Shown in pieces: positions 33,932-62,034 of a stretch of DNA of 64,000 nt. The stretch spans positions 1 to 64,000 of the forward strand of contig MCFE01000374.1 in assembly GCA_002104905.1 (NCBI GenBank). Reading direction: 5' to 3'. Every line of letters begins with the position of its first letter. Position 1 is the first letter of the stretch. Below the pieces are notes generated by a model. It was not told the DNA's origin. It made no database searches and saw only the letters and a list, made by a program, of their open reading frames with translations. Made by a program: the position numbers and the translations under genes. This DNA comes from Basidiobolus meristosporus CBS 931.73 (lineage: Eukaryota; Fungi; Basidiobolomycota).

Positions 33932-35630
33932 CTACTCCATCTTGGACATCATCTCGAAGATCTCGACGTTCCGCAAATGTCGGGCCATAAACCTCATGAA
34001 TTCAACGGTGTTGTTTTCGGGACTCATATGCTTGTCCAGAAAGATGACCGCCAGAGTAATCTGAGCGTCAGCTCGGATTAGGTAATAGGTGCTGCCGACC
34101 TTTTTGTCGTAAAAGTGAACGTATGTGGTCCGAATACTTGACAGGGAGATATCGTTTGTTTGCATGATTGAGATCAAATTCGGCCAGTGTTCGTAGGGGG
34201 GATTCTTTGGTACACAAAGGTTACAAAGCTGAATAACTCTAATCAAAACAAATGATAGTGTTACCTCTGGATAGCTATAAATGCATGGGAAAGACATCAG
34301 TCCAGACGGTGCCTCATATTTCCCGGTTAAGAAAACATGGCCCTTCTTGTGAAATGGCTTATCCGGAGTTACCTCGTATATCAGTGATATACTATGGGCG
34401 CCTGAGCGTTTCCGAAAATTTCGGATTCTGGAGAGTGTAGAATGGTGAGGGGGATGTAAAATCTGAGCGAGTAACAAACAGACTTACAACGTAGAGTAGT
34501 CAGGCTCAACCCGTTTCCAGAGCGTCTTCAGTTCTCCCCCAATCGATCGCTCTTTTTCCAATAAGGTCTCCTGAAAATAGAGGGTCATTTTCGACATCAG
34601 ACCATTGATGAATTGCGTGGTCCAACTCAAATTGTTGGGTAGTATCGGGGTATTTCGAAATGGACGGGTGTTTCTCTAAGAACAAAAGGTTATTTGGAGA
34701 TACATGAACTGATCGGGCCATGAACCCCTACATCTTGAGCCTCTGAAAGTGAGCACGCCTTTTTCCACTCAAAAAGCTCGTTTTTGGCAAGGTACAAGTT
34801 TACAGTCGACTTCTTGAAGTTGTATTCTCCTAGGGCAATCTGCGTACTGAATATATGATATAGTACATCAAGTTCTTTCCTAGTGTTGATGCCAAATTGA
34901 GTATGGTTCAAATCTCTTCAAGATTCATATCGTAGCTGATAATATCTTACTTGAGCACATATGATAGTAGCCCAAGGCTCTCTCCTAAAGGCATTTGCTG
35001 CAGTCTAGTTTGTATGTTGGAGATTTTGTCGCGAACTGCCTCATATTTCGTTCCTACAGACTCTCCGGATAAACTGCGATAGCTGGGAATAAGAATAACT
35101 TAGCACGATATCCGCCACCAAAAGATACAGCCAACGAGGCATACATGTTGATCTGCTCCTGACGTATGATGGCCAAGTCATTCAAGGCTCTGCAGAGCTG
35201 GTTCAAAAATGCAGAGGCAGCAGATTCCACGGGCGTAGGACTTCCACCTGAAAATAATACTTTCGCTTCTTTTATGGCGTCGTTACCAATGGTAGCGTAC
35301 AAAATATTCAAAAACTAAAACAACAGTGTCTTCGAGTTAGGGATTTTTCGAAACGATAGGAACTTGTTGAAAGATTACGTTTTCTCTCCGAAAGAATTTA
35401 GGCTTTAAGAAAGCAAGGCTAGTATATAGTGCTTCACAAGTTGCCAGCCGTGTTAGTATAGTTCCTACAGAGGGCGATAGCTAACAATTCGGCAAACCAA
35501 ATAAATTATCGACTCAGGTATCGAGAGGCTCAGGTATACATACCTTGTGAAGTTTTGAAGAAAACCGGTTAGCCTTGAAGTATTCGAAACCACCGAGAGC
35601 GTTCAGGTAGTCTTTACATGCGGCTTCCAT
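33932..35630 (-). CDS. KICSTOR subunit 2 (C12orf66/KICS2)-like protein, multi-exon
   Basis: Spliced N-terminus MEAACKDYLNALGGFEYFKA...LATCEALYTSLAFLKPKFFRREN|FLNILYATIGND; C-terminus EHWPNLISIM...VHFYDKKVGSTYYLIRADAQITLAVIF...FMRFMARHLRN. Both track human C12orf66 as I recall it (FFSHLGIFSYDKA; AEKVYHSLTYL; HWPNVIMIM; VHFYDDKVQSTYFL). Confidence 0.8.
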
Positions 35631-35915: not shown

Positions 35916-36612
35916 ATGGAAGAACCACGTGCGCTTATCAAGCAAACCATTGATACTTTCCAACCTTCGGGGGACCTAGACGTTATTCGGTACGTCAACA
36001 AATTACTTACCCAAACTGAAGAGCTAAGGCAAAAACATGCGAACGAGTGCAAAGACATCAACAAAAGTAAGTAAACCGTGTAAGAAACTGCACACACGAG
36101 CAACCTACTAACACGAACTGTTTTAGCACTTGAGAACGAGCTTGAGCTGGCCAAATCAAGCACCACTAGTTACAAATCCCTTGCTAATGACTTGAAGGGA
36201 GAAAACGTCCATAATCTTGAGCGTGAAAAACTCTTCTTATCAAAGCAGCTCCAGGATTCTGAAACCAAACTTGGCTCCTTGAAGACCGAGCTCGAGCAAC
36301 TGGAATCCGAATTGGCTGAACTAACCAGCCTTCCTGTTGAGGATGAGCTAGCTCCTGACCAGACAATGTAATCCCGCGATTTCTACTCAAGTGTGCTTGA
36401 CCATTTCTAACCTCATGCCTTTTTTAATTCCCTGCAGTTTGAAACTCCAAATCTACCGCTCTTTGGGTGTTGATGTTATCCCAGACGAACTCGGGAATCT
36501 GAACAAGATTCGGGTTCGCTCGACCGAAAAGAATGATATTCATACATTGTCGTTGGATGAGAATAGCTCCAAATACTCCCAAGTCAACCATTTGTGGGAT
36601 CTATGCTCTTGA
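35916..36612 (+). CDS. SPC24: Kinetochore Ndc80-complex subunit Spc24, multi-exon
   Basis: MEEPRALIKQTIDTF N-terminus, coiled coil, and RWD-type C-terminus LKLQIYRSLGVDV...NDIHTLSLD...YSQVNHLWDL. Confidence 0.8.
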
Positions 36613-38675: not shown

Positions 38676-41318
38676 TTAGATTCGTGGCTTTCTTTCAACG
38701 TCTGTACGGGCCTCATGAGAAGGCTGTAGGTTATACGCCTCAGAGCTCCACTTGGTAGGTTCAGATTTAGTATGTTGAGCAGGAAGCGGTTCAATTTTGG
38801 ATTCAGTCTTTCTTCTTTCGGCTTCCTGAAGCGCTTGTTCAGTAGCAAGTGCTATCTTGTTATCAAGGTCAAGCAGCATCTCTGTCAGCTTCTTTGGGAC
38901 CATCTGTTGGATGACTTTTTTCACCTTCGAGTTGATGAATGGCGCGAGGAGTTTGTAGGTGGTGCTGTGTCTGGTCCCATGGATCTTCAGCTTCAGGTCA
39001 TGCACCCGAGTATTGCAGTCTAACACCTCATACAGATGCGCCTTCTTCCCTTTCTCTGGGCTCACATTGAGCAGCAGATCCAGCTCAATCCCCTCCTCTG
39101 GCATGTCCACATCCATGTACCCAACATCGGTCATCTTGGGGAATGTCTTCTTGCGGTAGTAGAATGCCGCATCCCTCACCTTCACCTGGACATTGCTCAG
39201 CTTGATGTACACCTTGTTGCGGAGGTTCTGCTCTGCCTTGAGGTTGGTGTCCACCACCGTCTGGGTGTTGATGTGCACAAACTTGGGAAGGATGTTGCTG
39301 CACTGGATCACCACATTGTCCAACACCACGTCCAGCTTCTCGTCCGACTGCTCAACTCGTGGCAGTGGGACGTAGTCCATCTTCTCAGCGATGATCGGAA
39401 TCAACCTGGCAAAGTCCTTGACCAGGTCGTACTTGAATGTGGGCTTGCCAAATTCATCCATGAACAAGTCCTTTGTGAACGCCTCCAGATCCTGAACAAA
39501 CCGCTTGCTCGTCTTGTCTTGCTTCAGAGCAGCATTGAAGTTGCTCAACTCATCGCTGATCTGTGCAACTAGCCCGCGATATCTGTTCTCCACGATGGAG
39601 TGGCCACGCTCCACAATTCGGTTGGCGTCATCGGTGTACCCCGGACGATCAACATAGTCGTACTCGCGGATAGAGCGGTGGACGAATGTCTTGATGTCGC
39701 GTAGGAGCTCCGCCAAGTCATGATCTTGATTGGCTTTGTTAAGAAGCACCCTGACAGAGTCGAACAACGGGTCCAGCGACTTCTGCCCAGCAAAGTTCTC
39801 CACAAGCTCTTTCGCATTTGCTCTAGCAATCGACAGATCATCCTGAGCAACTTCGTGCTTGGCTGCGGTGGTCTCCTTGGCGGAGCTGGTCACATGACGG
39901 CCATGGTCCTTCAGCCCAGATAAGACTGAGAGAAGCTCGTCGACAGCCATCTGGAAGTCAGGATTGCCTTGGACCTCTCTGAAGATGGCCTTGACCCGCT
40001 GGATCAGGTGGGTGCGTTGATCTGGAGTCAGTCGCATGTCGGTGACCTTTTGCTGCAGCCCTGTTTGCACCTCCTTGGCTACCCCAACTGCAGCATCCAG
40101 CGGGGAGATCTCGCCTTGTTCAGCCTTGTGGACATACGGGAGAGCCGTCTCTTTGGCGTTGAAGTATACCGGGGCCATGGAGTCTTTCATAGTGTTCCTC
40201 AGTTGGTCCCTCGCCTCACCAGGCATCATCTCACGGTCCTCACCATGATGAACACTGTTCGGAACTCCTTGTGCTTGAGTGAGGTCGTGTGGGTGTGCAT
40301 ACGATTCAGCTCCATGTGGCCCTGTGGATGAGCCAATGACTGGCTGTTCCAGTTCGCCTCTGCCATAAGCACCCTCGGTCTGTGCGGTTTGTGCGAAGGG
40401 CACGCCATCAACGTCACTACCAATTCCACTCTGATTGGTGCGGTGATGGTAGCCAGGCTGATCACTGGCAAGTGTATCTGGTGCGGAGGTTGGTGCGCCT
40501 GCAATCCCTTCTGACGGTTGAGCCATATGGTTGGCGAATCGTCCTCCCTCTGAATCTCCGTTGCGAGTGAAGCTGTCGCCAGTGTGGTTATTGATGTCGA
40601 TGCCATTGTTGGCGCTAGCGTAGTTGTTAGGAGCTCCTACTGGGACCCTGGTCTGTTGGGCAGTTTGCATATCCGGATAGGTTGACTCACCAGTGTGTGG
40701 ATCTACTGTTGTCTCTCCATTCTGTGCTGGATGTCCGGGAACATTGGAGGTGACTGTCTCTTGCAGGATGTTCGTCACGTCATTGATCAGTCGGCGGAAC
40801 TGTGAGGAAGTGACCAGTAGCCAGGCTACCTTCGAGATGCTCTCCACCCCATCCGAAGCCAAATCCTTCGCCTCGCCAACTGTCCCGGAAAGCTCGCCCT
40901 TGGCCCCGGCGAGTTCATCCCCATCCTTCATGGTGTTACCAGCCTTGCCGCTGTGGTAGATGATGTTCTGTAGCTGATCATTGTCATTCTTCTCGGCGAG
41001 TAGGATTTGGGCCGACTCAACAAGACGCTCCGCGTTGGCCATCATTCTCTTTCCCTCAGGGCTCATATCCGAGGCTATGTCATGGAAGTTGTTGTTCTCG
41101 GTTAGCTTCTCCAGGCCCTGGTTGATCTGATTGGTGGTTGGCAGTCTGCCTTCCTGGAGCGCCTTACCCACCTCCTGGAGATGTTCTTTTCTGCGAATGA
41201 CCTTCTCCTGTTGGGTGCCCTGTTTCGGTGGCAAGCTCTCACCAGGAACCCCGATCTTTGTAGAGTCATTGATATGAGTTGAATGATCAGTGTTTGTGTT
41301 GGAGTTAGAAGGGCTCAT
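38676..41318 (-). CDS. HAM1-like (DUF5923/DUF4449-type) fungal protein, copy A, intronless, ~880 aa
   Basis: N-terminal PTTNQINQGL...SPEGKRMM..AERLVESAQILLAEKNDNDQLQNII; C-terminal YVPLPRVEQSDEKLDVVLDNVVIQCSNILP and DAAFYYRKKTFPKMTDVGYMDV. First ATG at 41318 (the ORF-track start is a CTG). Confidence 0.82.
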   Translation of the reverse strand: MSPSNSNTNTDHSTHINDSTKIGVPGESLPPKQGTQQEKVIRRKEHLQEVGKALQEGRLPTTNQINQGLEKLTENNNFHDIASDMSPEGKRMMANAERLVESAQILLAEKNDNDQLQNIIYHSGKAGNTMKDGDELAGAKGELSGTVGEAKDLASDGVESISKVAWLLVTSSQFRRLINDVTNILQETVTSNVPGHPAQNGETTVDPHTGESTYPDMQTAQQTRVPVGAPNNYASANNGIDINNHTGDSFTRNGDSEGGRFANHMAQPSEGIAGAPTSAPDTLASDQPGYHHRTNQSGIGSDVDGVPFAQTAQTEGAYGRGELEQPVIGSSTGPHGAESYAHPHDLTQAQGVPNSVHHGEDREMMPGEARDQLRNTMKDSMAPVYFNAKETALPYVHKAEQGEISPLDAAVGVAKEVQTGLQQKVTDMRLTPDQRTHLIQRVKAIFREVQGNPDFQMAVDELLSVLSGLKDHGRHVTSSAKETTAAKHEVAQDDLSIARANAKELVENFAGQKSLDPLFDSVRVLLNKANQDHDLAELLRDIKTFVHRSIREYDYVDRPGYTDDANRIVERGHSIVENRYRGLVAQISDELSNFNAALKQDKTSKRFVQDLEAFTKDLFMDEFGKPTFKYDLVKDFARLIPIIAEKMDYVPLPRVEQSDEKLDVVLDNVVIQCSNILPKFVHINTQTVVDTNLKAEQNLRNKVYIKLSNVQVKVRDAAFYYRKKTFPKMTDVGYMDVDMPEEGIELDLLLNVSPEKGKKAHLYEVLDCNTRVHDLKLKIHGTRHSTTYKLLAPFINSKVKKVIQQMVPKKLTEMLLDLDNKIALATEQALQEAERRKTESKIEPLPAQHTKSEPTKWSSEAYNLQPSHEARTDVERKPRI

Positions 41319-44300
41319 ATTGAACAGCACGATGAATTATCAGATTATTAACAAAGAATGTACAAAGTTGGAAAGTTTGAACTGTTCCCGAAGAACGCAA
41401 CTTTTTTTATAAAGCGGAAGCCGGTATAGAGTGTGACAACAACCCGTTGAAAATAAATTGAAACGGTGACGTTGATGAGAGCATAGTGATTGATAGCATA
41501 CCACTATTCTCGATCTAATAGACCTTCATATCTCATTGCTATTGCCAGACGAACTTCAACCATAACAATCAATTGTAGTTGGTGATTTAATTCATCCCCA
41601 TTTTTGGTATGGTCTGATGTTAGTATTACATAATACGCTAGACATTTATAATGAAATTGGCCATCATGACACCAAACTGAGTCGGAAATGGAGATACTTG
41701 CAACTTATTTTCATTAAGAGGTCCAACTATGGTTGGTTCAGTTTGACCAGAACTAACGACAAATCGGGGCGGAAATGGCAATGTTAATCACTGCTGAGCT
41801 AATTACTTTGGTGAAGGTTGAAATCATCTTTTGCTCATCCACAAAGTCGACGTCATCTGGCCTGCTTTATGAATGAACCATGATAGAATCTATATAAACG
41901 CTGTGAGAAACTTGGGTTTCTCCAGAATCCGCTTTGTATATTCTTCGTTAATAATCTATTAATTCATAACATGAACCCTACTAACTCCAACACAAACACT
42001 GATCATTCAACTCATATCAATGACTCTACAAAGATCGGGGTTCCTGGTGAGAGCTTGCCACCGAAACAGGGCACCCAACAGGAGAAGGTCATTCGCAGAA
42101 AAGAACATCTCCAGGAGGTGGGCAAGGCGCTCCAAGAAGGCAGACTGCCAACCACCAATCAGATCAACCAGGGCCTGGAGAAGCTAACTGAGAACAACAA
42201 CTTCCATGACATAGCCTCGGATATGAGCCCTGAGGGAAAGAGAATGATGGCCAACGCGGAGCGTCTTGTTGAGTCGGCCCAAATCCTACTCGCCGAGAAG
42301 AATGACAATGATCAGCTACAGAACATCATCTACCACAGCGGCAAGGCTGGTAACACCATGAAGGATGGGGATGAGCTCGCCGGGGCCAAGGGTGAGCTTT
42401 CCGGGACAGTTGGCGAGGCGAAGGATTTGGCCTCGGATGGGGTGGAGAGCATCTCGAAGGTAGCCTGGCTACTGGTCACTTCCTCACAGTTCCGCCGACT
42501 GATCAATGACGTGACGAACATCCTGCAAGAGACAGTCACCTCCAATGTTCCCGGACATCCAGCACAGAATGGAGAGACAACAGTAGATCCACGCACTGGT
42601 GAGTCAACCTATCCGGATATGCAAACTGCCCAACAGACCAGGGTCCCAGTAGGAGCTCCTAACAACTACGCTAGCGCCAACAATGGCATCGACATCAATA
42701 ACCACACTGGCGACAGCTTCACTCGCAACGGAGATTTAGAGGGAGGACGATTCGCCAATCATATGGCTCAACCGTCAGAAGGGATTGCGGGTGCAGCAAC
42801 CTCCGCACCAGATACACTTGCCAGTGATCAGCCTGGCTACCATCACCGCACCAATCAGAGTGGAATTGGTAGTGACGTTGATGGCGTGCCCTTCGCACAA
42901 ACCGCACAGACCGAGGGTGCTTATGGCAGAGGCGAACTGGAACAGCCAGTCATTGGCTCATCCACAGGGCCACATGGAGCTGAATCGTACGCACACCCAC
43001 ACGACCTCACTCAAGCACAAGGAGTTCCGAACAGTGTTCATCATGGTGAGGACCGTGAGATGATGCCTGGTGAGGCGAGGGACCAACTGAGGAACACTAT
43101 GAAAGACTCCATGGCCCCGGTATACTTCAACGCCAAAGAGACGGCTCTCCCGTATGTCCACAAGGCTGAACAAGGCGAGATCTCCCCGCTGGATGCTGCA
43201 GTTGGGGTAGCCAAGGAGGTGCAAACAGGGCTGCAGCAAAAGGTCACCGACATGCGACTGACTCCAGATCAACGCACCCACCTGATCCAGCGGGTCAAGG
43301 CCATCTTCAGAGAGGTCCAAGGCAATCCTGACTTCCAGATGGCTGTCGACGAGCTTCTCTCAGTCTTATCTGGGCTGAAGGACCATGGCCGTCATGTGAC
43401 CAGCTCCGCCAAGGAGACCACCGCAGCCAAGCACGAAGTTGCTCAGGATGATCTGTCGATTGCCAGAGCAAATGCGAAAGAGCTTGTGGAGAACTTTGCT
43501 GGGCAGAAGTCGCTGGACCCGTTGTTCGACTCTGTCAGGGTGCTTCTTAACAAAGCCAATCAAGATCATGACTTGGCGGAGCTCCTACGCGACATCAAGA
43601 CATTCGTCCACCGCTCTATCCGCGAGTACGACTATGTTGATCGTCCGGGGTACACCGATGACGCCAACCGAATTGTGGAGCGTGGCCACTCCATCGTGGA
43701 GAACAGATATCGCGGGCTAGTTGCACAGATCAGCGATGAGTTGAGCAACTTCAATGCTGCTCTGAAGCAAGACAAGACGAGCAAGCGGTTTGTTCAGGAT
43801 CTGGAGGCGTTCACAAAGGACTTGTTCATGGATGAATTTGGCAAGCCCACATTCAAGTACGACCTGGTCAAGGACTTTGCCAGGTTGATTCCGATCATCG
43901 CTGAGAAGATGGACTACGTCCCACTGCCACGAGTTGAGCAGTCGGACGAGAAGCTGGACGTGGTGTTGGACAATGTGGTGATCCAGTGCAGCAACATCCT
44001 TCCCAAGTTTGTGCACATCAACACGCAGACGGTGGTGGACACCAACCTCAAGGCAGAGCAGAACCTCCGCAACAAGGTGTACATCAAGCTGAGCAATGTC
44101 CAGGTGAAGGTGAGGGATGCGGCATTCTACTACCGCAAGAAGACATTCCCCAAGATGACCGATGTTGGGTACATGGATGTGGACATGCCAGAGGAGGGGA
44201 TTGAGCTGGATCTGCTGCTCAATGTGAGCCCAGAGAAAGGGAAGAAGGCGCATCTGTATGAGGTGTTAGACTGCAATACTCGGGTGCATGACCTGAAGCT

Positions 44301-44395
44301 GAAGATCCATGGGACCAGACACAGCACCACCTACAAACTCCTCGCGCCATTCATCAACTCGAAGGTGAAGAAAGTCATCCAACAGATGGTCCCAA
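38894..44395. repeat. Large inverted repeat: arms 38894-41308 and 41981-44395 (2415 bp each), 672-bp spacer
   Basis: Both arm ends map with the same coordinate sum (83289), so there is no net indel. Only 3 amino-acid differences within the arms (H/R, S/L, P/A) plus scattered synonymous SNPs. Confidence 0.97.
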
Positions 44396-44601
44396 TGAAG
44401 TTATCCGAAATGTTGGTTGATCTTGATGATAAAATTGCCTCGCAAACCGAAATCACGCTTGCAAAAGCATCCTTGAGAAAAGCCGAGATAGAGGAGGAGA
44501 AAAGAAGTTTAGATATGTCACAAGCCACGGCGACACCTGAAAAATGGGCTTCGGAGGCCTATGATCCTCGTTCGACTAGTAAAGACACGCCTGTGCAGTA
44601 A
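41971..44601 (+). CDS. HAM1-like (DUF5923/DUF4449-type) fungal protein, copy B, intronless, 876 aa
   Basis: Same motifs as copy A; differs at residues 2-4 and in the last ~68 aa. Confidence 0.82.
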   Translation: MNPTNSNTNTDHSTHINDSTKIGVPGESLPPKQGTQQEKVIRRKEHLQEVGKALQEGRLPTTNQINQGLEKLTENNNFHDIASDMSPEGKRMMANAERLVESAQILLAEKNDNDQLQNIIYHSGKAGNTMKDGDELAGAKGELSGTVGEAKDLASDGVESISKVAWLLVTSSQFRRLINDVTNILQETVTSNVPGHPAQNGETTVDPRTGESTYPDMQTAQQTRVPVGAPNNYASANNGIDINNHTGDSFTRNGDLEGGRFANHMAQPSEGIAGAATSAPDTLASDQPGYHHRTNQSGIGSDVDGVPFAQTAQTEGAYGRGELEQPVIGSSTGPHGAESYAHPHDLTQAQGVPNSVHHGEDREMMPGEARDQLRNTMKDSMAPVYFNAKETALPYVHKAEQGEISPLDAAVGVAKEVQTGLQQKVTDMRLTPDQRTHLIQRVKAIFREVQGNPDFQMAVDELLSVLSGLKDHGRHVTSSAKETTAAKHEVAQDDLSIARANAKELVENFAGQKSLDPLFDSVRVLLNKANQDHDLAELLRDIKTFVHRSIREYDYVDRPGYTDDANRIVERGHSIVENRYRGLVAQISDELSNFNAALKQDKTSKRFVQDLEAFTKDLFMDEFGKPTFKYDLVKDFARLIPIIAEKMDYVPLPRVEQSDEKLDVVLDNVVIQCSNILPKFVHINTQTVVDTNLKAEQNLRNKVYIKLSNVQVKVRDAAFYYRKKTFPKMTDVGYMDVDMPEEGIELDLLLNVSPEKGKKAHLYEVLDCNTRVHDLKLKIHGTRHSTTYKLLAPFINSKVKKVIQQMVPMKLSEMLVDLDDKIASQTEITLAKASLRKAEIEEEKRSLDMSQATATPEKWASEAYDPRSTSKDTPVQ

Positions 44602-45907: not shown

Positions 45908-46267
45908 AGGCCTTGTTTGGATGATGTCCACTCCTGCATGTGCAACTAAAGAGATATGTAAAAAAAGCAAGCTAATGTAATTTGATGGTTAGCTAATACA
46001 GAGATTCGGATTCCAAATTCCTGTCCATACTAACCCATCGTTTACACTACTCGATAACCTAGCAAGAAAATCCAAGCCACATGAATCGGTTCTGTCTGTA
46101 CGCTCTCGCTAATGAACATGTTCCATTTCCAAGCTAAATTTGGGGATTTCTTCAGCGGTCACACACCAATAAAGCAAATGGAAATGCATTGTCTCAGCCA
46201 AGCCCTAGCGGCCTATAAATTCAGATACTACCCTCTTGGACACACAGACCCCTTTCATTACACCTCA

Positions 46268-48799
46268 ATGGATGTTGCTAATTTAATATATTCCGGTGAT
46301 GTGGCTGCAATACAGAAGAATATTCTTCCTGCTTCTGTTAATCAACTTGACTCTCAGGGAAGATCCGCCTTAGGAATCGCTGCTACAACCAACAACGTGG
46401 CCATCGTGGAGAAACTGCTAGAGATTGGAGCAGACGTTAATCTAAGACATGAAAATGGCGCGAGCCCTATTTCTATCGCTGCTGAGTATGGCTACTTTCA
46501 AGTGGTAAAAGCAATCGCCAGACATGAGTGGGATGTGAAGGAGCAAGGGCCCCAAGTGCTACTGAATTGTATTCGACACAACAACCCACATATCATCGAT
46601 TGGCTGTATGCTCAGGGAGTAACCCCTGGTTTATTTGAAGAGTCCGAAAAACTCCCAATGGTGCAAGCTGTGTATCACGGTCATTTGGAGAACGTTAGGA
46701 AACTGGCTGAACTTGGATTTGATGTCAATAAGTTTGAATCCCACGGTAGTAACCACTCAGCACTGCTAACTGCTTGCTACTGGAACCAAATAGATATTGC
46801 ACAATATTTGTTGAGTCTACCCGAGATTAATCTGGGCTATAAACGACAGGGCTATCAAGGTTTAATGCTGGCCATTGGGGGAAATCATCCTCGCATAGCT
46901 CGTAAATTGCTTGAAGCAGGCGTGGATCCCTCGGATTACGATCCGGAAACAGAACAAGCACCAATGGTTCAAGCAGGGTATGTGGGTTCGACTGAAATAG
47001 CCAAAGAACTAGTCAATCACGGGGGAAGATATGAAGCACTTGACAGTCGAAATGATACCATGCTTATGCTTGCCTCATATTGGGGGCATGCGGAATTGGT
47101 GCGATACTTACTGTCAGAAACAATTGATCTTTCGATCCATGACCAGGGGAAGAGAAGTTTGCTCAAGGCAATTGAGCAGGATCACGACAGAATAGTTAAA
47201 TCGCTACTAGAGTATGGCCAGAGCCCAAACCCCGACGACCCAGAGGTGGACACAGTGCCTATCATACGAGCCAGCTACAAGGATAACGTGAAAATCATCA
47301 ACTTACTTCTAAAGCATGGTGCTGACAGTAATACAGTGGGCCATGACTCCTCGACATCAATCACCACTGCTGCCTATTGGAATCACGAAAAGGCCTTGGT
47401 ATGCTTGCTCGAACATGGGGTGGACTTCAACAAAGAGAAGCAAGGGTTCCGTGCACTCATTATCGCAATCGAGCGAGGCCATTTTCGCATCGCTCGGAAA
47501 TTGCTTGAAGCTGGTGTGGATGCTGAGGACTACGACCCTGAGGTCGATCCAGTACCCATGGTGACTGCAGGCGCAAATGGCAGCGTCAAAACGTTGGAAG
47601 TTTTACTCAAGCACAGTCTTGATATCAACTCGATACGGCATGACGACCATACTGCGTTGACTATTGCTACTTATTGGGATCACTATGCTGCTGTGAAAGC
47701 CATCATCGAGGCCGGAGTGGATATGGAAAGCCACCGTCAAGGCTGGAGGGCTTTGATAATCGCTGTAAATCGAAACCACCATCGAATACTGAAGCTATTG
47801 CTTAACACAGGCATGAAGATGAATCTACCGGTCGAAGGGGACGATCCGAATCCCATCCTGATCGCCGCCCGTGATGGGAACACGGAAATACTAAAGCTAT
47901 TACTTGGTGCTGGTGCTGGTGGTGATCTGAACCAATATTGGGGAACCGTCAGCTGCCCATTGATGGCAACTATTTCCTCCAACCATTACGATGCTACAAA
48001 ATACCTAATCGAGAATAGCTCAGCAGCACACAACAAGGAATTACTCGAAAATGCCCTTCAGGAGGCTGAAAAGCGCGGTCTTTCAGAGCACTGCCAGCTG
48101 TTGCAAGAATCCCTGCTAAAAAAAGAGGACTCGGCCAACGAAGACATATTTGCATGCATAAAATCTGGGGAATTAGCCGCCGTTCGTGAATGTCTGTCAC
48201 GAAGTCCAGAGAGGATATATTCGAGGCTGGCGCCAACAGAACAAACGCCCTTGATAGTTGCCAGCAGGGAAAATCAGCCAGAGATAATCGAGTTTCTCCT
48301 GGAAAAGGGTGCCAATATCGATGCAAGCGACAACGAACGACAGACACCTTTGATTCTTGCCGTTCGCTTGGACCTACAAGAGATCGTCCACATTCTACTG
48401 AAACGTGGCGCCAATCCAAACTTATGTACGGGGCCGCAAAACAAGACACCTCTGATGTTTGCGATAGAAAACGATCATAAGGAGATATTTGAACTGCTAC
48501 TCCAACATAATGCCTCTGTATGTTATCCTGATTTACGCTTAAGAACCCCATTGATGTACGCAGCTGAGGAAGGGCGCGACCACTTCTTACCCCCGCTGCT
48601 GGAAAAGGGAGCCCGCATCCAAGAACGGGATGACTCGGACACCACAGCCATAATGCTCGCCTCATACAAACACCATCAAAAAACTGCTCAAGTTCTCATT
48701 GAAAATGGGGCCACCATTGAAAAACGGGATCTTAACAAGCTTAGTGGGATTGGATGGCTCATGTCACTGATAAAACGATCACTATCCAATTTCTTCTAA
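46268..48799 (+). CDS. Large ankyrin-repeat protein (>20 repeats), intronless; start at 46268 or up to 46112
   Basis: Recurrent ankyrin motifs (GRSALGIAA...VEKLLEIGADVN; EQTPLIVAS...IEFLLEKGANID; RQTPLILAV...ILLKRGANPN; RTPLMYAA...LLEKGARI). No catalytic domain recognised. Confidence 0.92.
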   Translation: MDVANLIYSGDVAAIQKNILPASVNQLDSQGRSALGIAATTNNVAIVEKLLEIGADVNLRHENGASPISIAAEYGYFQVVKAIARHEWDVKEQGPQVLLNCIRHNNPHIIDWLYAQGVTPGLFEESEKLPMVQAVYHGHLENVRKLAELGFDVNKFESHGSNHSALLTACYWNQIDIAQYLLSLPEINLGYKRQGYQGLMLAIGGNHPRIARKLLEAGVDPSDYDPETEQAPMVQAGYVGSTEIAKELVNHGGRYEALDSRNDTMLMLASYWGHAELVRYLLSETIDLSIHDQGKRSLLKAIEQDHDRIVKSLLEYGQSPNPDDPEVDTVPIIRASYKDNVKIINLLLKHGADSNTVGHDSSTSITTAAYWNHEKALVCLLEHGVDFNKEKQGFRALIIAIERGHFRIARKLLEAGVDAEDYDPEVDPVPMVTAGANGSVKTLEVLLKHSLDINSIRHDDHTALTIATYWDHYAAVKAIIEAGVDMESHRQGWRALIIAVNRNHHRILKLLLNTGMKMNLPVEGDDPNPILIAARDGNTEILKLLLGAGAGGDLNQYWGTVSCPLMATISSNHYDATKYLIENSSAAHNKELLENALQEAEKRGLSEHCQLLQESLLKKEDSANEDIFACIKSGELAAVRECLSRSPERIYSRLAPTEQTPLIVASRENQPEIIEFLLEKGANIDASDNERQTPLILAVRLDLQEIVHILLKRGANPNLCTGPQNKTPLMFAIENDHKEIFELLLQHNASVCYPDLRLRTPLMYAAEEGRDHFLPPLLEKGARIQERDDSDTTAIMLASYKHHQKTAQVLIENGATIEKRDLNKLSGIGWLMSLIKRSLSNFF

Positions 48800-52362: not shown

Positions 52363-52942
52363 TGTTGTAAAAATTTGTATTTCCACCTAAATATTCACCT
52401 AACTTAGTCACTTAGATCATTACCCTCAAATCCTAGAGAATACTGACCAAATTCCTTGTTGGGATTTACTTAGAATATTTTCACCAAAATACCTGGTACC
52501 CAGAACATGAAAATTCTCAAAGTTGTCCAAACAGCCCCAAACTTAGCACACATGCTCTTGGGACCTTTCTTAACCTATTCTACATGTTTGTTATGCCAAG
52601 ACCATGTAAAAGTATAAATACTACTTTTACATTCAATAAATCATTAAGTGAAACCACATAATCTACTTGTTCTCCCAATCACTTCCAATATCTCCAAGAC
52701 TCTTACAATAGGTTATGAGCCCCAAGCTGTCACTCTCTGCAATGTCTACTACTGCTATTACTGGAATTTTTCCCTTTGCTGAAAAGTTGGATGGATCTAA
52801 CTACCAAGTGTGGAAGGTGAAGATGAAGATCCTGCTACAAGAAAGAGGCCTTTGGGATATTGTCATGGGAGAAGAATGCCCTCCTAAAAACATGGGAGAG
52901 GAAGCCTTAAAGTACCAGAAGAAAGAACAAAGTGCCTTTGAT
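52363..52942 (+). mobile_element. Ty1/Copia 5' LTR (52363-52710), PBS and truncated gag start
   Basis: LTR runs TGTTG...CAATA with TATAAATA and AATAAA; GGTTATGAGCCC follows immediately; then EKLDGSNYQVWKVKMKILLQERGLWDIV (Copia gag N-terminus). Homology with the second copy stops at ~52942. Confidence 0.82.
52711..52722 (+). promoter_or_regulatory. Copia primer-binding site of the half-tRNA-iMet type
   Basis: GGTTATGAGCCC directly after the LTR end resembles the GGTTATGGGCCC PBS of Drosophila copia. A degenerate second copy (GGATATAAGCCC) lies at 55835-55846. Confidence 0.6.
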
Positions 52943-53031: not shown

Positions 53032-54303
53032 TCATCTTCTCCTGGGTTTTTTTCTCACAGGGATTACTACTGAAGCATTTGGTAGTGACTCACTTTGCAC
53101 ACCTATACTACTTCCTGGCTGACTATCATCTTGGCTACTTGTGTATTTGTAGTCAGTATTTTGCCTCCTAGTTGATGAGTGCGATGCTGCAGCTTGGCCG
53201 CGCTGAATCGCTCTGACTGAACCAACTGAACCAACTGAACTGGCCTGTAGTGCCACGCACTGACGCGTTCTTTTACTTGCCAAGGGCTCCGGTGGTTGAG
53301 TCACTTCATGTTGGTCATCATCAGTCAGTTCACCAGATGTAACTTGCTGATGGTCAGGCAAAACAGCACGCGCAGGCGCGCCTTGACGTGTTGAGATGGC
53401 CCTTGGCTGAGTTTGATGTGATGCCGCATGTTGACGCGACTTGGTCTGCTCCAATGGACTTGTGTCTAAGTGAGCAGTTTGGCGAGTTCTGGTAGTTTTG
53501 CTCTGAAGCGCGTGCGTTGACCCGACGCGTGTTGACTCAATGCGCGTTGACTCGACGCGGGGCGTTCTGGTAAAGGGTGTTGGCGTGGTCTGGACTGACG
53601 TGCGCCGGCGCGCTGTGGTTGCAAGAGATGGTAGGGAATCCAGCAAGGCGTGCTGGCGCAATCTGGACGATGTTGCTCGCGGTCTGTATTCTTCCTCCTG
53701 AAGCTCACCATCTGATTCCTCAAGGTATTTACTTACCCTCTGTCTGATACTTTGGAGCTGTTGCCTGGATGAGTCCTGTGTATATTGCTCTTGGAAGCCA
53801 CTTAGCTCTACTAATATATCACGTAGTACATTAGTCATTTGAGGCAAAAACTCATTCAAAATCTCTTTGGTTCCCAAAGTTGAGGCACAAACAGATGCGT
53901 CCGGCCCGTACTGTGCAAATTGCGCGCAAAATTGTTCCCGCGCGGCTTCCTCGTCAAATCCCCTCACTCTCAGCTCATTCTTGATTTCAATACTTGTGTT
54001 GTTATATATCTTTTTACATACATCGGCTGGCATCTTGATGTAGAACTCATACCACAGCTTTCTACTCAAATTCTTCCATCTTTGTCGACTCTCTGAGGTA
54101 TCTAGTTCTGCTAGATTAATCAGTAGTGCCCAAATATCTGTATGAAGGCTCATCATAGACACTTGGGCCATACTAAAATCATTTGGCGAGAACTCGAACG
54201 GATCCGACATCGACTTTTCCGGTCCAGACCGCGCTTGTGAGCTGGGGGATGGGTTTTGTCTGGGTTGTACTAAAGATGAGTTGAGGCTTGGTATGGGGAC
54301 CAT
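53032..54303 (-). CDS. Putative Harbinger accessory protein (possible Myb/SANT-like trihelix N-terminal part, disordered S/T/R/Q-rich tail), 423 aa
   Basis: Uninterrupted 423-codon frame inside a repeat compartment; DIWALLINL...RQRWKNLSRKLW resembles the RWKNL helix of MADF/Myb-SANT domains; head-to-head with the transposase; C-terminal basic NLS-like RKKPRRR. Confidence 0.55.
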   Translation of the reverse strand: MVPIPSLNSSLVQPRQNPSPSSQARSGPEKSMSDPFEFSPNDFSMAQVSMMSLHTDIWALLINLAELDTSESRQRWKNLSRKLWYEFYIKMPADVCKKIYNNTSIEIKNELRVRGFDEEAAREQFCAQFAQYGPDASVCASTLGTKEILNEFLPQMTNVLRDILVELSGFQEQYTQDSSRQQLQSIRQRVSKYLEESDGELQEEEYRPRATSSRLRQHALLDSLPSLATTARRRTSVQTTPTPFTRTPRVESTRIESTRVGSTHALQSKTTRTRQTAHLDTSPLEQTKSRQHAASHQTQPRAISTRQGAPARAVLPDHQQVTSGELTDDDQHEVTQPPEPLASKRTRQCVALQASSVGSVGSVRAIQRGQAAASHSSTRRQNTDYKYTSSQDDSQPGSSIGVQSESLPNASVVIPVRKKPRRR

Positions 54304-54662
54304 AGCAACGGATTTGGATACTTATACAGCAGTATATTGGCATCAACCTGGTCTTATATGAAATATATATGAAAACTAAAGTGATTGCTGAATTTTCCAT
54401 ATATTATGCATGATGCATCTCGGATCGCGTTGACACGGATCAGATCACATCAATCGCAGATTTCCTATTTGATTATAGACCTATGATTAAAGCATCAATA
54501 AAAGTACCAAGGCATTGTTTGCGGATGATTTTTGCGACATAATGATGGGATACATGGCAATTGATGGAGATTTAACCATAATGTGTTAAAAATCAGATAA
54601 ATAACGCAGATCGCGCCGAATCGATTCAAACCGCCTCCATACGATCATCCATCAATTTTAAT

Positions 54663-55547
54663 ATGACTTACTCATCTGAATGGTCTCTTCTCATCAATCC
54701 CATCACTACCACTGGATTTCCTTTTGACACACTGGAGGAGATCTATTCCAAGTACTGTGGACCATCAACCCCAATCTACTCAAGGAGATCCCTTGTTAAG
54801 CTTCTCTGCTATTACAAGAACTAATGCCCTACAAGGTTTCATCCCACCATCCATGGCAACAAAAGTCCTAGAAGCTTTCATTCCCAGCTGACAGCAATGG
54901 AGAACCACCTTGCAGAGGGTATGAATGACTTAGAGCAAGCTTGGAATACTAGGTTCAGAAGCTCCAATAGACTTCCATATCCCAGAGTGTTCAGCAACAG
55001 GTTCTATATCAGGAGTATTTTGGATACCTTCCCAGTGAGGATTAACAGACCTTCTAGAGGGCAGAGGCACTTTTATTCTGGCAAGTACAAGGCACACTGT
55101 GTGAAGTTTCAAGCACTGTCTGACATTGAGGGTAACATCATCTGGTTTAGTGGGCCATTTGCTGGAAGTAGGCATGACAAAGCACTCTGGGTAGAGAATC
55201 ATCCTGAATTCAGTAGAGGGGAGAAATGTATGGCAGACTTGGCCTATATAGGAGAGGATTGTCAGAGATTAGGATGTATTACAGCTTATAGGAAGCCAAG
55301 GAATGGTGTGCTTAGCAGGAAGCAGAAGCTCTACAATGAGATATTTAATCATTTCAGAGTAAGGGTAGAGCACACATTTGGATATCTGAAGAGATTCAGC
55401 ATATTGGCAGGTAAATACAGAGGAAAGTCATATATAGGAGAAAACAGCAGAATAGGTAAAATAGTTAAGATACTTATCAATGCACAGTATGTTCATACAA
55501 GAAGACATCCACTGAGAGAAATGTGTCTGGAGCATTATGAAGAGTAA
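54663..55547 (+). pseudogene. Harbinger/ISL2EU-type DDE transposase, 294 codons with one in-frame TAA at 54822-54824
   Basis: ATG at 54663 is in frame with the 216-aa ORF. Catalytic motifs ILDTF, FYSGKYKAHCVKFQ, GPFAGSRHD, MADLAY and RVRVEHTFGYLKRFSIL are intact. Confidence 0.88.
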
Positions 55548-55641
55548 ATAAAGCAAGGAAAGCACTATTCTGAGCAACATAAGTAAGATTGAGTAAAATT
55601 ACCAGTAACTGTATCATACCACTGGCATCATGGTAGAAATT

Positions 55642-55721
55642 ATAGTGCCAGATAGTGCCGTAGAGTGCCAGATTGATCCGGCACTATAAACCGGCTGGCA
55701 CTATGTGGCACTATCCAATGG
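55642..55721. repeat. Subterminal palindromic motif cluster: 3x AGTGCC followed by 3x GGCACT
   Basis: ATAGTGCCAGATAGTGCCGTAGAGTGCCAGATTGATCCGGCACTATAAACCGGCTGGCACTATGTGGCACTATCCAATGG. Confidence 0.9.
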
Positions 55722-58150
55722 AACAAGTCTAATGTATAAATACTATATTTTACATTCAATCAATGATTAAGTGAAAACCACATAATCTACTTGTTCTTGC
55801 AAGCACTTCCAATATCTCCAAGACTTGTGCAACAGGATATAAGCCCTAAGCTGTCACTCTTTGCAAAGTCCACTATTGCAATTACTCCAATTTTCCCCTC
55901 CATTGAAAAGTTGGATGGATGTAGCAATCAAGTGTGGAAGGTGAAGATGAAGATGCTGCTACAAGAAAGCAGTCTTTGGGATATTGTCATGGGAGAAGAA
56001 TATGTGGGTTATTACTTACTGTTCTTTGTGAGTGGGAGAGCATGTAGGTCAAGTCAGTACCACTTGGCTCATAATAGCTTCCAATAGAAGGTAGCAAGGT
56101 AATAAAGACCTGTGCTTATTCTGTCCAAATCTTCCTGTCCTCCCACCTTGTTCAATTGGATATATATATATATATATAACACTTGGGGGGGCTTAGATAA
56201 TAGACAATGTACTATAAAATAGGGGTGTGAACACCTTCCTGTCATGGTAAGTGTTCTAACTAGATAAGGGGAGGGATAGGAGGGAGGACACAAGGGGGAA
56301 TCATAGGGAGGATACTGGGGGACTTTGGGTAGGACTCTGGGGAGAACTCTTGGGCAAAGAGTGGGTTCTACATTTAGTACTCACAGAATGCTCTCCTAAA
56401 GATGTAGGAGAGGAAGCCTTAAGGTACCCAAAGAAAGAGCAAAGTGCCCTCAACTACATCTGCCTTAATGTCAAAGACAAATTGCTATTTCAATGCCCAA
56501 GCGCAAGAACTGCAAAGAATGCCTGGAAGACATTAGAACACACCTACCAGTCATGTTCAGATGCTAAGAGAATGTATTCTAGACAAAAATTCTTTACTAC
56601 AAAGACCCTGATAGGAGAAGAAATGAAAAATCTAATTAATAGAATTACCCTGCTGGTAGATGAAATGAATCTGTGGATATACCAACTACTAATAAGGATG
56701 TGATTGTTGACACCCTGAATGGCCTGACTAACAGGTTTCAGGGCCTTGTATCAGTTTTAGAGTTCCGAACTGCAGATTTAATCTTAAATTATGTATATGG
56801 AAGGCTCCTGGATGAAGAATTAACAAAATCAAGCCCTAGTAAGAAGGAAGAAGAAATACTTCAATAAGCAATGATTACCAACAGAGGAAATACTCAAGAC
56901 CCTTTAAAGAAATAGCAACATGCTTTGCAACTATAGCAAAAGCAGAGGATCCACATTAGACCAATGCTCCAAAAAGAGAGATACTCAGCAGAAAAGGCCT
57001 GAATATTGGGATGCTGCAACAGCTGACAAGCAACTAATAATATATGCACTAAATGTCACCACAAACAATGATTTGCAGGTATAATACATTGACTCTAGTG
57101 CATATTAACACTTTACACACCAAAAAGAACTCTTACCCTATATCAAAAAATTTCAATTAAAAAGGTTTTCATGGGTGATAATAGAATACTTGATGAATGG
57201 GAGAAGGAACTATCCAAGTAAACCTTAGAAGCAGTCAAGGAAGCCATACACTGACCATCAAAAAAGTACCCTACATACAAGAAATAGTCCAGAACCTACA
57301 GTCAGTAAGCAAGGTCACTGCAGATGGACTCAGTTTCAGCTTTGACAATTCTTGATGCAGGATCACTGATTAAAATGGTGCTCATATTGCTCTGGGTAAA
57401 AGAGATCAGAATCTATACAAGTCAAATTATATTCTGTGATATCAGGAAGCCAATATAGGCATCTAGAATGAAGAAACACTAATGCTTTGGCACAGGAGAT
57501 TTTGACACATCAAATGTGATTATTTGTGCAAAATGATGAAAGATCAGCTAATTTCTGGAGTAAAATTGATCCCCCAGTTGATTTGAAGAATTGTGAAACC
57601 TGCATATATGGGAAACAAGCCAGAAAACTGCTCAAGAGCTCTGGGTTAGTCAAAACCAAGAACAAACTAGTTCTAATTCACACAGATATGTGTGGACCAA
57701 TGCAAAACTTATCCTTAGGCAGGATGAAGTATTTAATCAATAATATTGATGATTACAGAGGAAACCTGTAGGTCTACTTCATGGGGAGAGCAAAAGAAGC
57801 TCTGTCTAAGCTCAGGGAGTTTAAAGCCATGGTGGGGAGAGAAACTGGTGAAAAAATCAAGAAGATACACTCTGACAATGGAGGAGATTATACCTCAAAC
57901 TCTTAATCCTCCTCAGCACAATTTATGGGATAAAGCAAGTGACTACTGCATCATACTCCCCACAACAAGATGGAGTAGTAGTACATGCAGACATTTCAAT
58001 AAATGATATGGAAAGATCTATGATCTGTGATTAAAAATATCTTATGATATTTGAACAGATTCAGTTGCTATAGCTGTATACATCAGAAATAAGAGTTAAG
58101 ACAAAGCAATTTGTGATTCTACTCCATTTGAAGCATGGTATGGATACATA
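55722..58150 (+). mobile_element. Degenerate, truncated Ty1/Copia element (LTR 3' part, gag, protease, GAG-pre-integrase, integrase; no RT/RNase H seen)
   Basis: KLDGCSNQVWKVKMKMLLQE; AKNAWKTLEHTY; IIDSSA; LWHRRF*H; CETCIYGKQAR; LIHTDMCGPM; IDDY; IHSDNGGDY; TPFEAWYG, with many stops and frameshifts. Confidence 0.9.
56003..56385. mobile_element. Solo LTR (383 bp) inserted in Copia gag
   Basis: Termini TGTGGGT...ACTCACA; flanking 5-mers GAATA and GAATG. Removing it restores GEECSPK, matching GEECPPK in the first gag copy. Confidence 0.85.
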
Positions 58151-59659: not shown

Positions 59660-60357
59660 TGTTGTATCCAAGAGAAAAGTTTAATACAACTCCTGAATTG
59701 TCTAACTGAGCCTAAGTGACAACCAAATGCAGAACCTTAGAATTGTCAGAAAGTGGTGGAAATATTAGCAGATTGGTTCTGGTCTAATATTGGTCTTGAG
59801 TATAGCTGGGTTTGGCAACAAAGGTAATGGAGCTGGTTTGCTATGCAGGCTGGGACTTGTGTTTTTGGGAGTGTTACATATGCTAGGCTTGGGTGGAAAC
59901 AAGAACATGATTGTTCAGTTCTTAATTTGCTAAGACACAATCTTAATTTTGTTGAGACACACACAAAGCCAAAAGGCTCAGTAAGCTTTATTTATACTTT
60001 TTCAATCAAGTTGAATTAATAAGTGCTAAGACACTGGACTAACTGAGATCTGTTGGGATGTTGATAGGTGCATAGAATAAATGAAAAATTGCATCATTAA
60101 TCACCTGATGTCTTGGCAACTGCACAGTTGTTGGATATATTTCAGATGACTAGTTTGGCAGATAGTTTGATAATGTAGTGGCCACATGATAGTTGATCAG
60201 GTATGACAGCTAATAATATATACTGAGATCAGATAAAATAAATCATAACTGGGATTAGATATGTTTGGGGTAGGGAAAATCAGGTTGGGAACTAGACTAG
60301 GTATTGGATTTTTTAACAGAGTAAAATTGGCTAAGTCTTAAATGTTGATGCACAATA
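59660..60357 (-). mobile_element. Solo LTR (~698 bp), same family as 61336-62034
   Basis: Termini TGTTG...CAATA; flanks GTACT and GTATT (TSD with one C>T); aligns end to end with the reverse complement of 61336-62034. Confidence 0.85.
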
Positions 60358-61335: not shown

Positions 61336-62034
61336 TGTTGTGCATCCACATTTAAGACTTGGCCAATTTCACTCTGTTAGAAAATTTAGTACCCTAACTG
61401 ATTTTCCCTAACCCAAACATAACTAATCCCTGTTATGGTTTATTTTATCACTTCTCAGAATCTATTTTTAGCTGTCACACCTGATTAATTTTCATGTGGT
61501 CATCACGTACTCAACTGATCTGCTAAGCCTTTCTAAGTGATTAGTCATCAGAGATTTATCCAACCACTTAGCACTTGCCAAGACATCAGCTGATTGATGA
61601 TGCAATTTTTCATTTACCTTATACACCTTTCAACACCCCAATAGATATCAATTAGTCCAGTCTCTTGGCGCTTACCAATGCAACTCAATCAGAAAAGTAT
61701 AAATAAAGTATACTGAACCTTTTGGTTAAGTGTGTGTCTCAACAAAATTAAAATTGTGCTTCAGCAAAATTAAGAATTCAGCAATTCTGTTCTAGTTTCC
61801 ACCTAAGCTTAGCATATCTAGTATTCCCAAGAACACCAAGCCTAGCCTGTATAGCAAACCAACTCTGTTGCCTTTATAGCCCAACTCAACTATATACAAA
61901 ACCAATATTAGACCAGAACTTCTCTGCTAATATTTCTGTCACCCTTGACAATTCTAAGATTCTGAACTTAGTTATCACTTAGGCTCATTTAACTCATTCA
62001 AGAGTTTTATTACACTTTTCTCTTGGATACAACA
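61336..62034 (+). mobile_element. Solo LTR (~699 bp)
   Basis: Termini TGTTG...CAACA; internal TATAAATAAA; flanks CTTAC and CTTGC (TSD with one transition). Confidence 0.85.

Follow-up and report, generated by a model that had tools for sequence, protein, structure and literature searches.

The stretch of DNA analysed here, referred to as the window, comprises 64,000 nucleotides (nt) from the fungus Basidiobolus meristosporus CBS 931.73 (GenBank assembly GCA_002104905.1, contig MCFE01000374.1, positions 1 to 64,000 of the forward strand), the genome of which was sequenced with PacBio technology (PMC7466969). It harbors two adjacent HAM1-like genes, designated L and R, that are divergently transcribed in a head-to-head arrangement, with each open reading frame (ORF) pointing away from the spacer between them. 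A repeat search between positions 36000 and 47500 revealed a single inverted repeat, whose 2,471-nt arms are 99% complementary and are separated by 646 nt. The other repeats in the whole window are 107-227 nt long with 70-87% identity, and the HAM1-like inverted repeat is the only long, near-identical one. The genes and the arms, both of the latter taken from the repeat search, are placed as follows.

38676-41318, minus strand: L gene, an intact HAM1-like ORF of 880 amino acids (aa) from the ATG at 41318, with its stop codon at 38676-38678
41971-44601, plus strand: R gene, an intact HAM1-like ORF of 876 aa, with its stop codon at 44599-44601
38851-41321, minus strand: left inverted-repeat arm, in the limits to which the repeat finder extended it, 99% complementary to 41968-44438
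41968-44438, plus strand: right inverted-repeat arm, likewise in the limits to which the repeat finder extended it

Both proteins are recognized by the Pfam profile HAM1_N (PF19343/PF14613 family), with E-values of 3.9e-103 for L and 5.9e-103 for R and a score of 346 bits against a gathering cut-off of 27. The HAM1_C profile scores 24.9 bits (L) and 21.5 bits, under the cut-off of 27, and only positions 2-70 of its 162 are covered. The proteins also carry a long low-complexity insert, at residues ~216-345. The Cryptococcus protein HAM1 corresponds to HAM-13 of Neurospora, which has been tied to cell fusion and mating (bioRxiv 10.1101/2023.09.18.558251). A search of solved structures by sequence found no relative, and an AlphaFold2 model built from a six-sequence alignment was discarded, as its mean predicted local distance difference test score (pLDDT) was 32.8.

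The R protein is 100% identical to a public protein of the same strain, the partial model ORX90570.1 (P0001). This model lacks both ends of the gene, and it removes residues ~190-331 as an in-frame intron (positions 42538-42963 of the window in R). The removed stretch is coding, because its start (N-V-P-G-H-P ... S-T-Y-P) is invariant in all six Basidiobolus homologues. As this is the sole public model of the locus, one gene of the pair seems to lack an annotation.

Alignment of L with R divides each gene into a near-identical core and two more diverged ends, which are located as follows.

38895-41306, minus strand: strictly homogenised core of L, codons 5-808, 2,412 bp, from the base-by-base alignment
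41983-44394, plus strand: strictly homogenised core of R, codons 5-808, 2,412 bp, from the base-by-base alignment
38679-38894, minus strand: L tail, 72 codons, related by homology to that of R and anciently diverged from it, ending with the conserved W-x-S-E-A-Y motif
44395-44598, plus strand: R tail, 68 codons, more diverged than any other Basidiobolus tail of the family (maximum-likelihood (ML) distance of 1.5 from that of L and 1.7 from that of B. ranarum)
41307-41367, minus strand: stratum of intermediate divergence on the L side (proximal 5' region and codons 1-4), with 44 of 51 positions identical to 41932-41982, plus a 10-bp indel (insertion or deletion)
41932-41982, plus strand: stratum of intermediate divergence on the R side, from the alignment to the L side
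41322-41967, no strand: unique, AT-rich spacer (37% GC), the presumed divergent promoters and 5' untranslated regions of both genes, whose halves align at chance level (121/292)

Over the 2,412 bp of the core, L and R differ at 16 positions (99.3% identity), without a single indel. Transitions account for 14 of these differences, and 13 lie at third codon positions and are all synonymous, which departs from the expectation of one third (binomial p=1e-4). The three non-synonymous differences affect residues 208, 256 and 276, all within the low-complexity middle of the protein. By the Nei-Gojobori method (NG86), the core has 0.024 synonymous substitutions per synonymous site (dS) and 0.0016 non-synonymous substitutions per non-synonymous site (dN). 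Taken together, these differences resemble real divergence under purifying selection.

The near-identity breaks off after codon 808 (...QQMVP). Past this point the L and R tails are still homologous (BLASTP E=3e-13, 27/56 identical), with 49% identity at the DNA level. Third codon positions are identical in 35% of cases, for a chance expectation of 27%, and second positions in 65%. The dN of the tails is 0.59, and their dS is undefined by NG86, their synonymous sites being saturated. The tails are, judging by their substitutions, old and still constrained as protein. The W-x-S-E-A-Y motif near the C-terminus is common to L, R, their B. ranarum orthologue (P0002) and a HAM1-like paralogue of the same genome (P0005).

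On the 5' side, the approximately 50 bp before each ATG and codons 1-4 are 86% identical, corresponding to ~14% divergence, and the remainder of the spacer is at chance level. No tRNA, Rfam match, structured RNA, repeat or long ORF was found in the spacer. Its length depends on the boundaries chosen, with 646 nt between the arms as delimited by the repeat finder, 652 nt from one start codon to the other and 676 nt from strict core to strict core. The near-identical tract is therefore flanked on both sides by homologous, far more diverged sequence.

A preliminary description of the window, made from the sequence and a list of its ORFs, had anticipated much of this organization. It had described two head-to-head HAM1-like genes with near-identical arms, the abrupt end of identity at ...QQMVP and the persisting homology of the tails, all of which are borne out by the intact ORFs, the repeat search and the alignments. 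Its count of only three amino-acid differences is correct for codons 5-808, but codons 2 and 4, ahead of the strict core, differ as well, and the spacer of 672 bp that it reported corresponds to none of the three lengths measured. It had also proposed to compare dS between core and tails and to compare species. The first comparison agrees with its view that the copies are old relative to the core. The second, at the protein level, shows what it had named as support for conversion, a core more alike within than between species.

For the species comparison, P0002 is the sole B. ranarum protein of the L/R lineage on record. The L and R cores are 99.4% identical as proteins, while each is 72% identical to P0002. 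Similarly, the ML distance between the cores is 0.005 for L and R, versus 0.37 to P0002, and the core tree groups L with R, apart from the B. ranarum protein. The tails behave differently, with ML distances of 1.5 between L and R, 1.1 between L and P0002, and 1.2-1.8 to the other paralogue lineage; the P0002 tail is 46% identical to that of L and 37% identical to that of R. Since the core has a dS of 0.024 and 72% identity to B. ranarum, and the homologous tails are saturated, the core must have coalesced far more recently than the ends. Core coalescence would be perhaps fifty times more recent than the divergence of the ends, and the latter would be on a timescale comparable to that of the split between the two Basidiobolus species.

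The structure of the locus, its mosaic divergence and the contrast between species therefore argue for interlocus gene conversion. It is very probable that L and R are two old, adjacent, head-to-head HAM1-like paralogues whose codons 5-808 have been overwritten by such arm-to-arm conversion. For the mosaic, no cause is reasonable other than gene conversion or a recombinational overwrite equivalent to it. Purifying selection alone was considered as the cause of core identity and rejected, as the synonymous sites are nearly identical too and the B. ranarum orthologue differs at 28% of the core residues.

As to the mechanism, a break in one arm might be repaired by homologous recombination with the other arm as template, so that one copy would overwrite the other. 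At least one such conversion would be recent, and it was probably not the only one. The tracts would stop where homology has decayed, past codon 808 on the 3' side and some 50 bp ahead of the ATG on the 5' side. Because the tracts would end there, the tails and the promoters would escape conversion and keep diverging. The outcome would be two genes with the same 804-residue body, differing in their C-terminal tails (~70 residues) and in their promoters, and the two copies might also have split functionally. General homologous recombination suffices for these steps, and a partial, ORF-based check found no recombinase nearby. Both the dedicated conversion system postulated in the preliminary description and the role it attributed to conversion in keeping the gene intact are unsupported.

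The distribution of differences along the core bears on the number of events. Codons 5-340 hold 13 of the 16 differences (dS 0.044), versus three in codons 341-808 (dS 0.0097). In R, the more diverged part of the core reaches to about 42800-42990, with the best change point at 42803, and a change-point permutation test gives p=0.018 for all sites. Three strata of divergence can thus be distinguished, with ~14% divergence in the 5' proximal region, a dS of 0.044 in the 5' part of the core and a dS of 0.0097 in its 3' part. This pattern suggests that the conversion tracts date from two or three different times at the least, although the evidence for this is modest. Between the arms of mammalian Y palindromes, the difference amounts to a few hundredths of a percent. 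Because the synonymous divergence of the L and R arms, at 2.4%, is much above that value, 'episodic' describes the process better than 'continual'.

Several observations weigh against this interpretation or narrow its reach. When synonymous sites alone are considered, the permutation test gives p=0.14. More than one event is suggested by the data, and the continual homogenisation claimed earlier is plausible but weakly supported. The 5' proximal region could owe its conservation to regulatory constraint and not to an older tract. In the tree of the tails, built on 66 columns, all topologies for L, R and P0002 lie within 0.2 log-likelihood of each other, with p-values of the approximately unbiased test (p-AU) of 0.36-0.70 from 1,000 replicates, a number flagged as too few by IQ-TREE; none of the topologies is rejected, and the L and R tails may have split before or after B. 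meristosporus and B. ranarum did. The comparison at the DNA level concerns one genome, and that with B. ranarum was made at the protein level. No R-type tail was found in other species by protein searches with residues 790-876 and with a 139-aa fragment, but this negative carries little weight, since word and length filters make the searches blind to fragments and they cover few Basidiobolus proteomes. Finally, the GC content at third codon positions is ambiguous with respect to GC-biased conversion, at 0.65 for the core, 0.39-0.44 for the tails and 0.46 for the low-complexity middle of the core, and no claim is based on it. In metagenomes, the alignment of six proteins picked up a single contig of 2.2 kb, whose HAM1-like gene is 35% identical and belongs to some other fungus.

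A different history could be imagined, in which the whole gene underwent a recent inverted duplication and the tail, promoter and flanks of one copy were then replaced, for example by conversion from a third, diverged paralogue or by rearrangement. Possible donors are present in the genome, in the form of the HAM1-like paralogues P0003 and P0005, and the B. ranarum annotation holds one orthologue only, with an L-like tail. This scenario is nevertheless improbable. It calls for two separate replacements, one at each end, with the 3' one in frame and at a homologous position. Apart from L and R, P0005 alone has a complete tail, which is no nearer to that of R (33%) than to that of L (36%), and no sequence is shared beyond the gene ends, where a recent duplication should have left some common flank. 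Even then, the replacement would itself still be gene conversion, with the roles reversed. That the palindrome is an assembly artefact, arising from a chimeric palindromic long read or from collapsed or mis-joined haplotypes, was considered because the assembly was built from PacBio data, and PacBio reads lacking an adapter can yield palindromes. Such artefactual palindromes are perfect and without a spacer, whereas the locus has an asymmetric, unique spacer of 646 nt and different genes on its two sides, a DEAD-box helicase gene on the left and an ankyrin-repeat gene on the right. The arms moreover lead into two different homologous tails, both in frame, and differ by 16 substitutions with a signature of purifying selection and zero indels. 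Together with the annotation of a second HAM1-like pair elsewhere in the genome, these features make an artefact extremely improbable.

The identity of the arms might also be maintained for the sake of a functional flip-flop, in which crossover between them would regularly invert the spacer and swap the pairing of promoters and tails. Inverted repeats of ~2.4 kb recombine to give inversions in yeast, and the geometry of the locus permits the inversion of the spacer by crossover that the preliminary description had proposed, with inverted 2.4-kb arms that are 99.3% identical placed around a spacer with unrelated halves. On the other hand, no site-specific recombinase or transposase was found within ~10 kb in an ORF-based check, which is partial since the genes have introns, and the spacer contains no structured RNA or repeat. 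The single assembly shows one spacer orientation, and the 0.7% divergence of the arms argues against frequent exchange. A regular switch of this kind is therefore highly unlikely.

Conversion between L and R may have a counterpart elsewhere in the genome. The second HAM1-like pair consists of P0005 (ORX91653) and P0003 (ORX91654), which have consecutive accessions and are located on one 97,383-bp scaffold. Their protein records are identical over 662 aligned residues, save for one substitution and a 17-residue difference between splice models. The partial model P0003 ends five residues past the position at which L and R diverge. The twin layout might represent an old design kept by selection at two loci, each with conversion confined to the body, two tail isoforms and two promoters, and with occasional crossovers that would re-pair promoters and tails; this broader proposal is improbable. 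In B. ranarum, the orthologue of the second pair, P0004 (KAK9759551.1), is alone on a 2,188-bp contig barely longer than its coding sequence. It may be speculated that this contig reflects the collapse of a two-copy repeat in a short-read assembly, which would hint at a duplicated gene in B. ranarum as well.

The neighbors of the HAM1-like genes comprise a DEAD-box helicase, an ankyrin-repeat protein, a KICSTOR C12orf66-like protein, an ABC-membrane fragment and ORFs without a family. Two of them were delimited in the window.

33932-34477, minus strand: C12orf66_like ORF (KICSTOR subunit), Pfam E=2.6e-26, in agreement with the KICS2-like reading of the preliminary description
46112-48799, plus strand: intron-less ORF of 895 aa immediately downstream of R, made almost entirely of ankyrin repeats (Ank_2, E=7e-132, 13 stretches)

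Farther to the right lie two direct repeats of 227 nt, at 52651-52877 and 55775-56001, which are 87% identical and 3.1 kb apart. They enclose an ORF of 423 aa without a Pfam family (53032-54303) and a segment at 54644-55658 that was described earlier as a transposase gene. The repeats and the enclosed DNA may form a mobile element with terminal direct repeats. In addition, the AT-rich end of the window contains inverted repeats of ~400 nt that are 81-83% identical, at 59759-60152 and 61542-61936. They were detected as two adjoining pairs and surround ~1.4 kb of DNA, and they may represent transposon ends or another small palindrome.

Conversion between adjacent inverted paralogues has been known since the 1980s, as exemplified by the hsp16 inverted repeat of C. 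elegans, with its unique spacer of 416 bp (PMC3966223). Adjacent inverted hsp70 genes also show conversion (reviewed in PMC3966223; for Drosophila cases, see PMC3924832). Like those systems, L and R are head-to-head copies a few hundred base pairs apart, with near-identity that spans no more than all or part of the ORF and halts before older flanks, and the explanation is conversion rather than recent duplication. The Basidiobolus locus differs from them by its early-diverging fungal host, by its HAM1-like family and by the end of the tract inside the coding region, which gives rise to distinct homologous C-terminal tails.

Arm-to-arm conversion is also well documented in the palindromes of mammalian sex chromosomes (PMC8600007; PMC3403216; PMC8327919). 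As in those palindromes, the inverted arms are at least 99% identical, the spacer is unique, and the identity between arms exceeds that between orthologues. The arms of mammalian palindromes range from ~9 kb to more than 1 Mb, are typically more than 99.9% identical, and lie in non-recombining or sex-linked DNA with testis-expressed gene families. In contrast, the L/R arm measures 2.4 kb inside a single gene, shows 2.4% synonymous divergence and lies in an ordinary housekeeping neighborhood.

In fungi, the concerted evolution of duplicated ribosomal-protein genes is well documented (PMC6993855). The L/R pair resembles these genes in that the coding sequences are held alike by interlocus conversion while the flanks diverge. 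Most such ribosomal-protein pairs lie dispersed in the genome, with dosage-related selection as the presumed force acting on them. L and R, in contrast, are adjacent and inverted.

With respect to function, the closest points of reference are HAM1 of Cryptococcus neoformans and HAM-13 of Neurospora crassa, which belong to the same family according to the Pfam HAM1_N profile, a likeness that for the Basidiobolus proteins is one of sequence. The Basidiobolus proteins are set apart from HAM1 and HAM-13 by their partial HAM1_C coverage (the first ~70 of 162 positions) and by their long low-complexity insert.

The conversion mechanism is thus textbook, and what is particular to the L/R locus is the host, the gene family and the intragenic tract boundary that leaves two tail isoforms. 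In an early-diverging fungus, the pair thus offers a well-bounded case of partial concerted evolution, with a body that is kept while the tails and promoters diverge. It also carries a warning for annotation, as the public gene set has one truncated model for the locus, and dating of the paralogues from whole-gene identity would be badly wrong. Ectopic conversion between inverted neighbors may be common in B. meristosporus.

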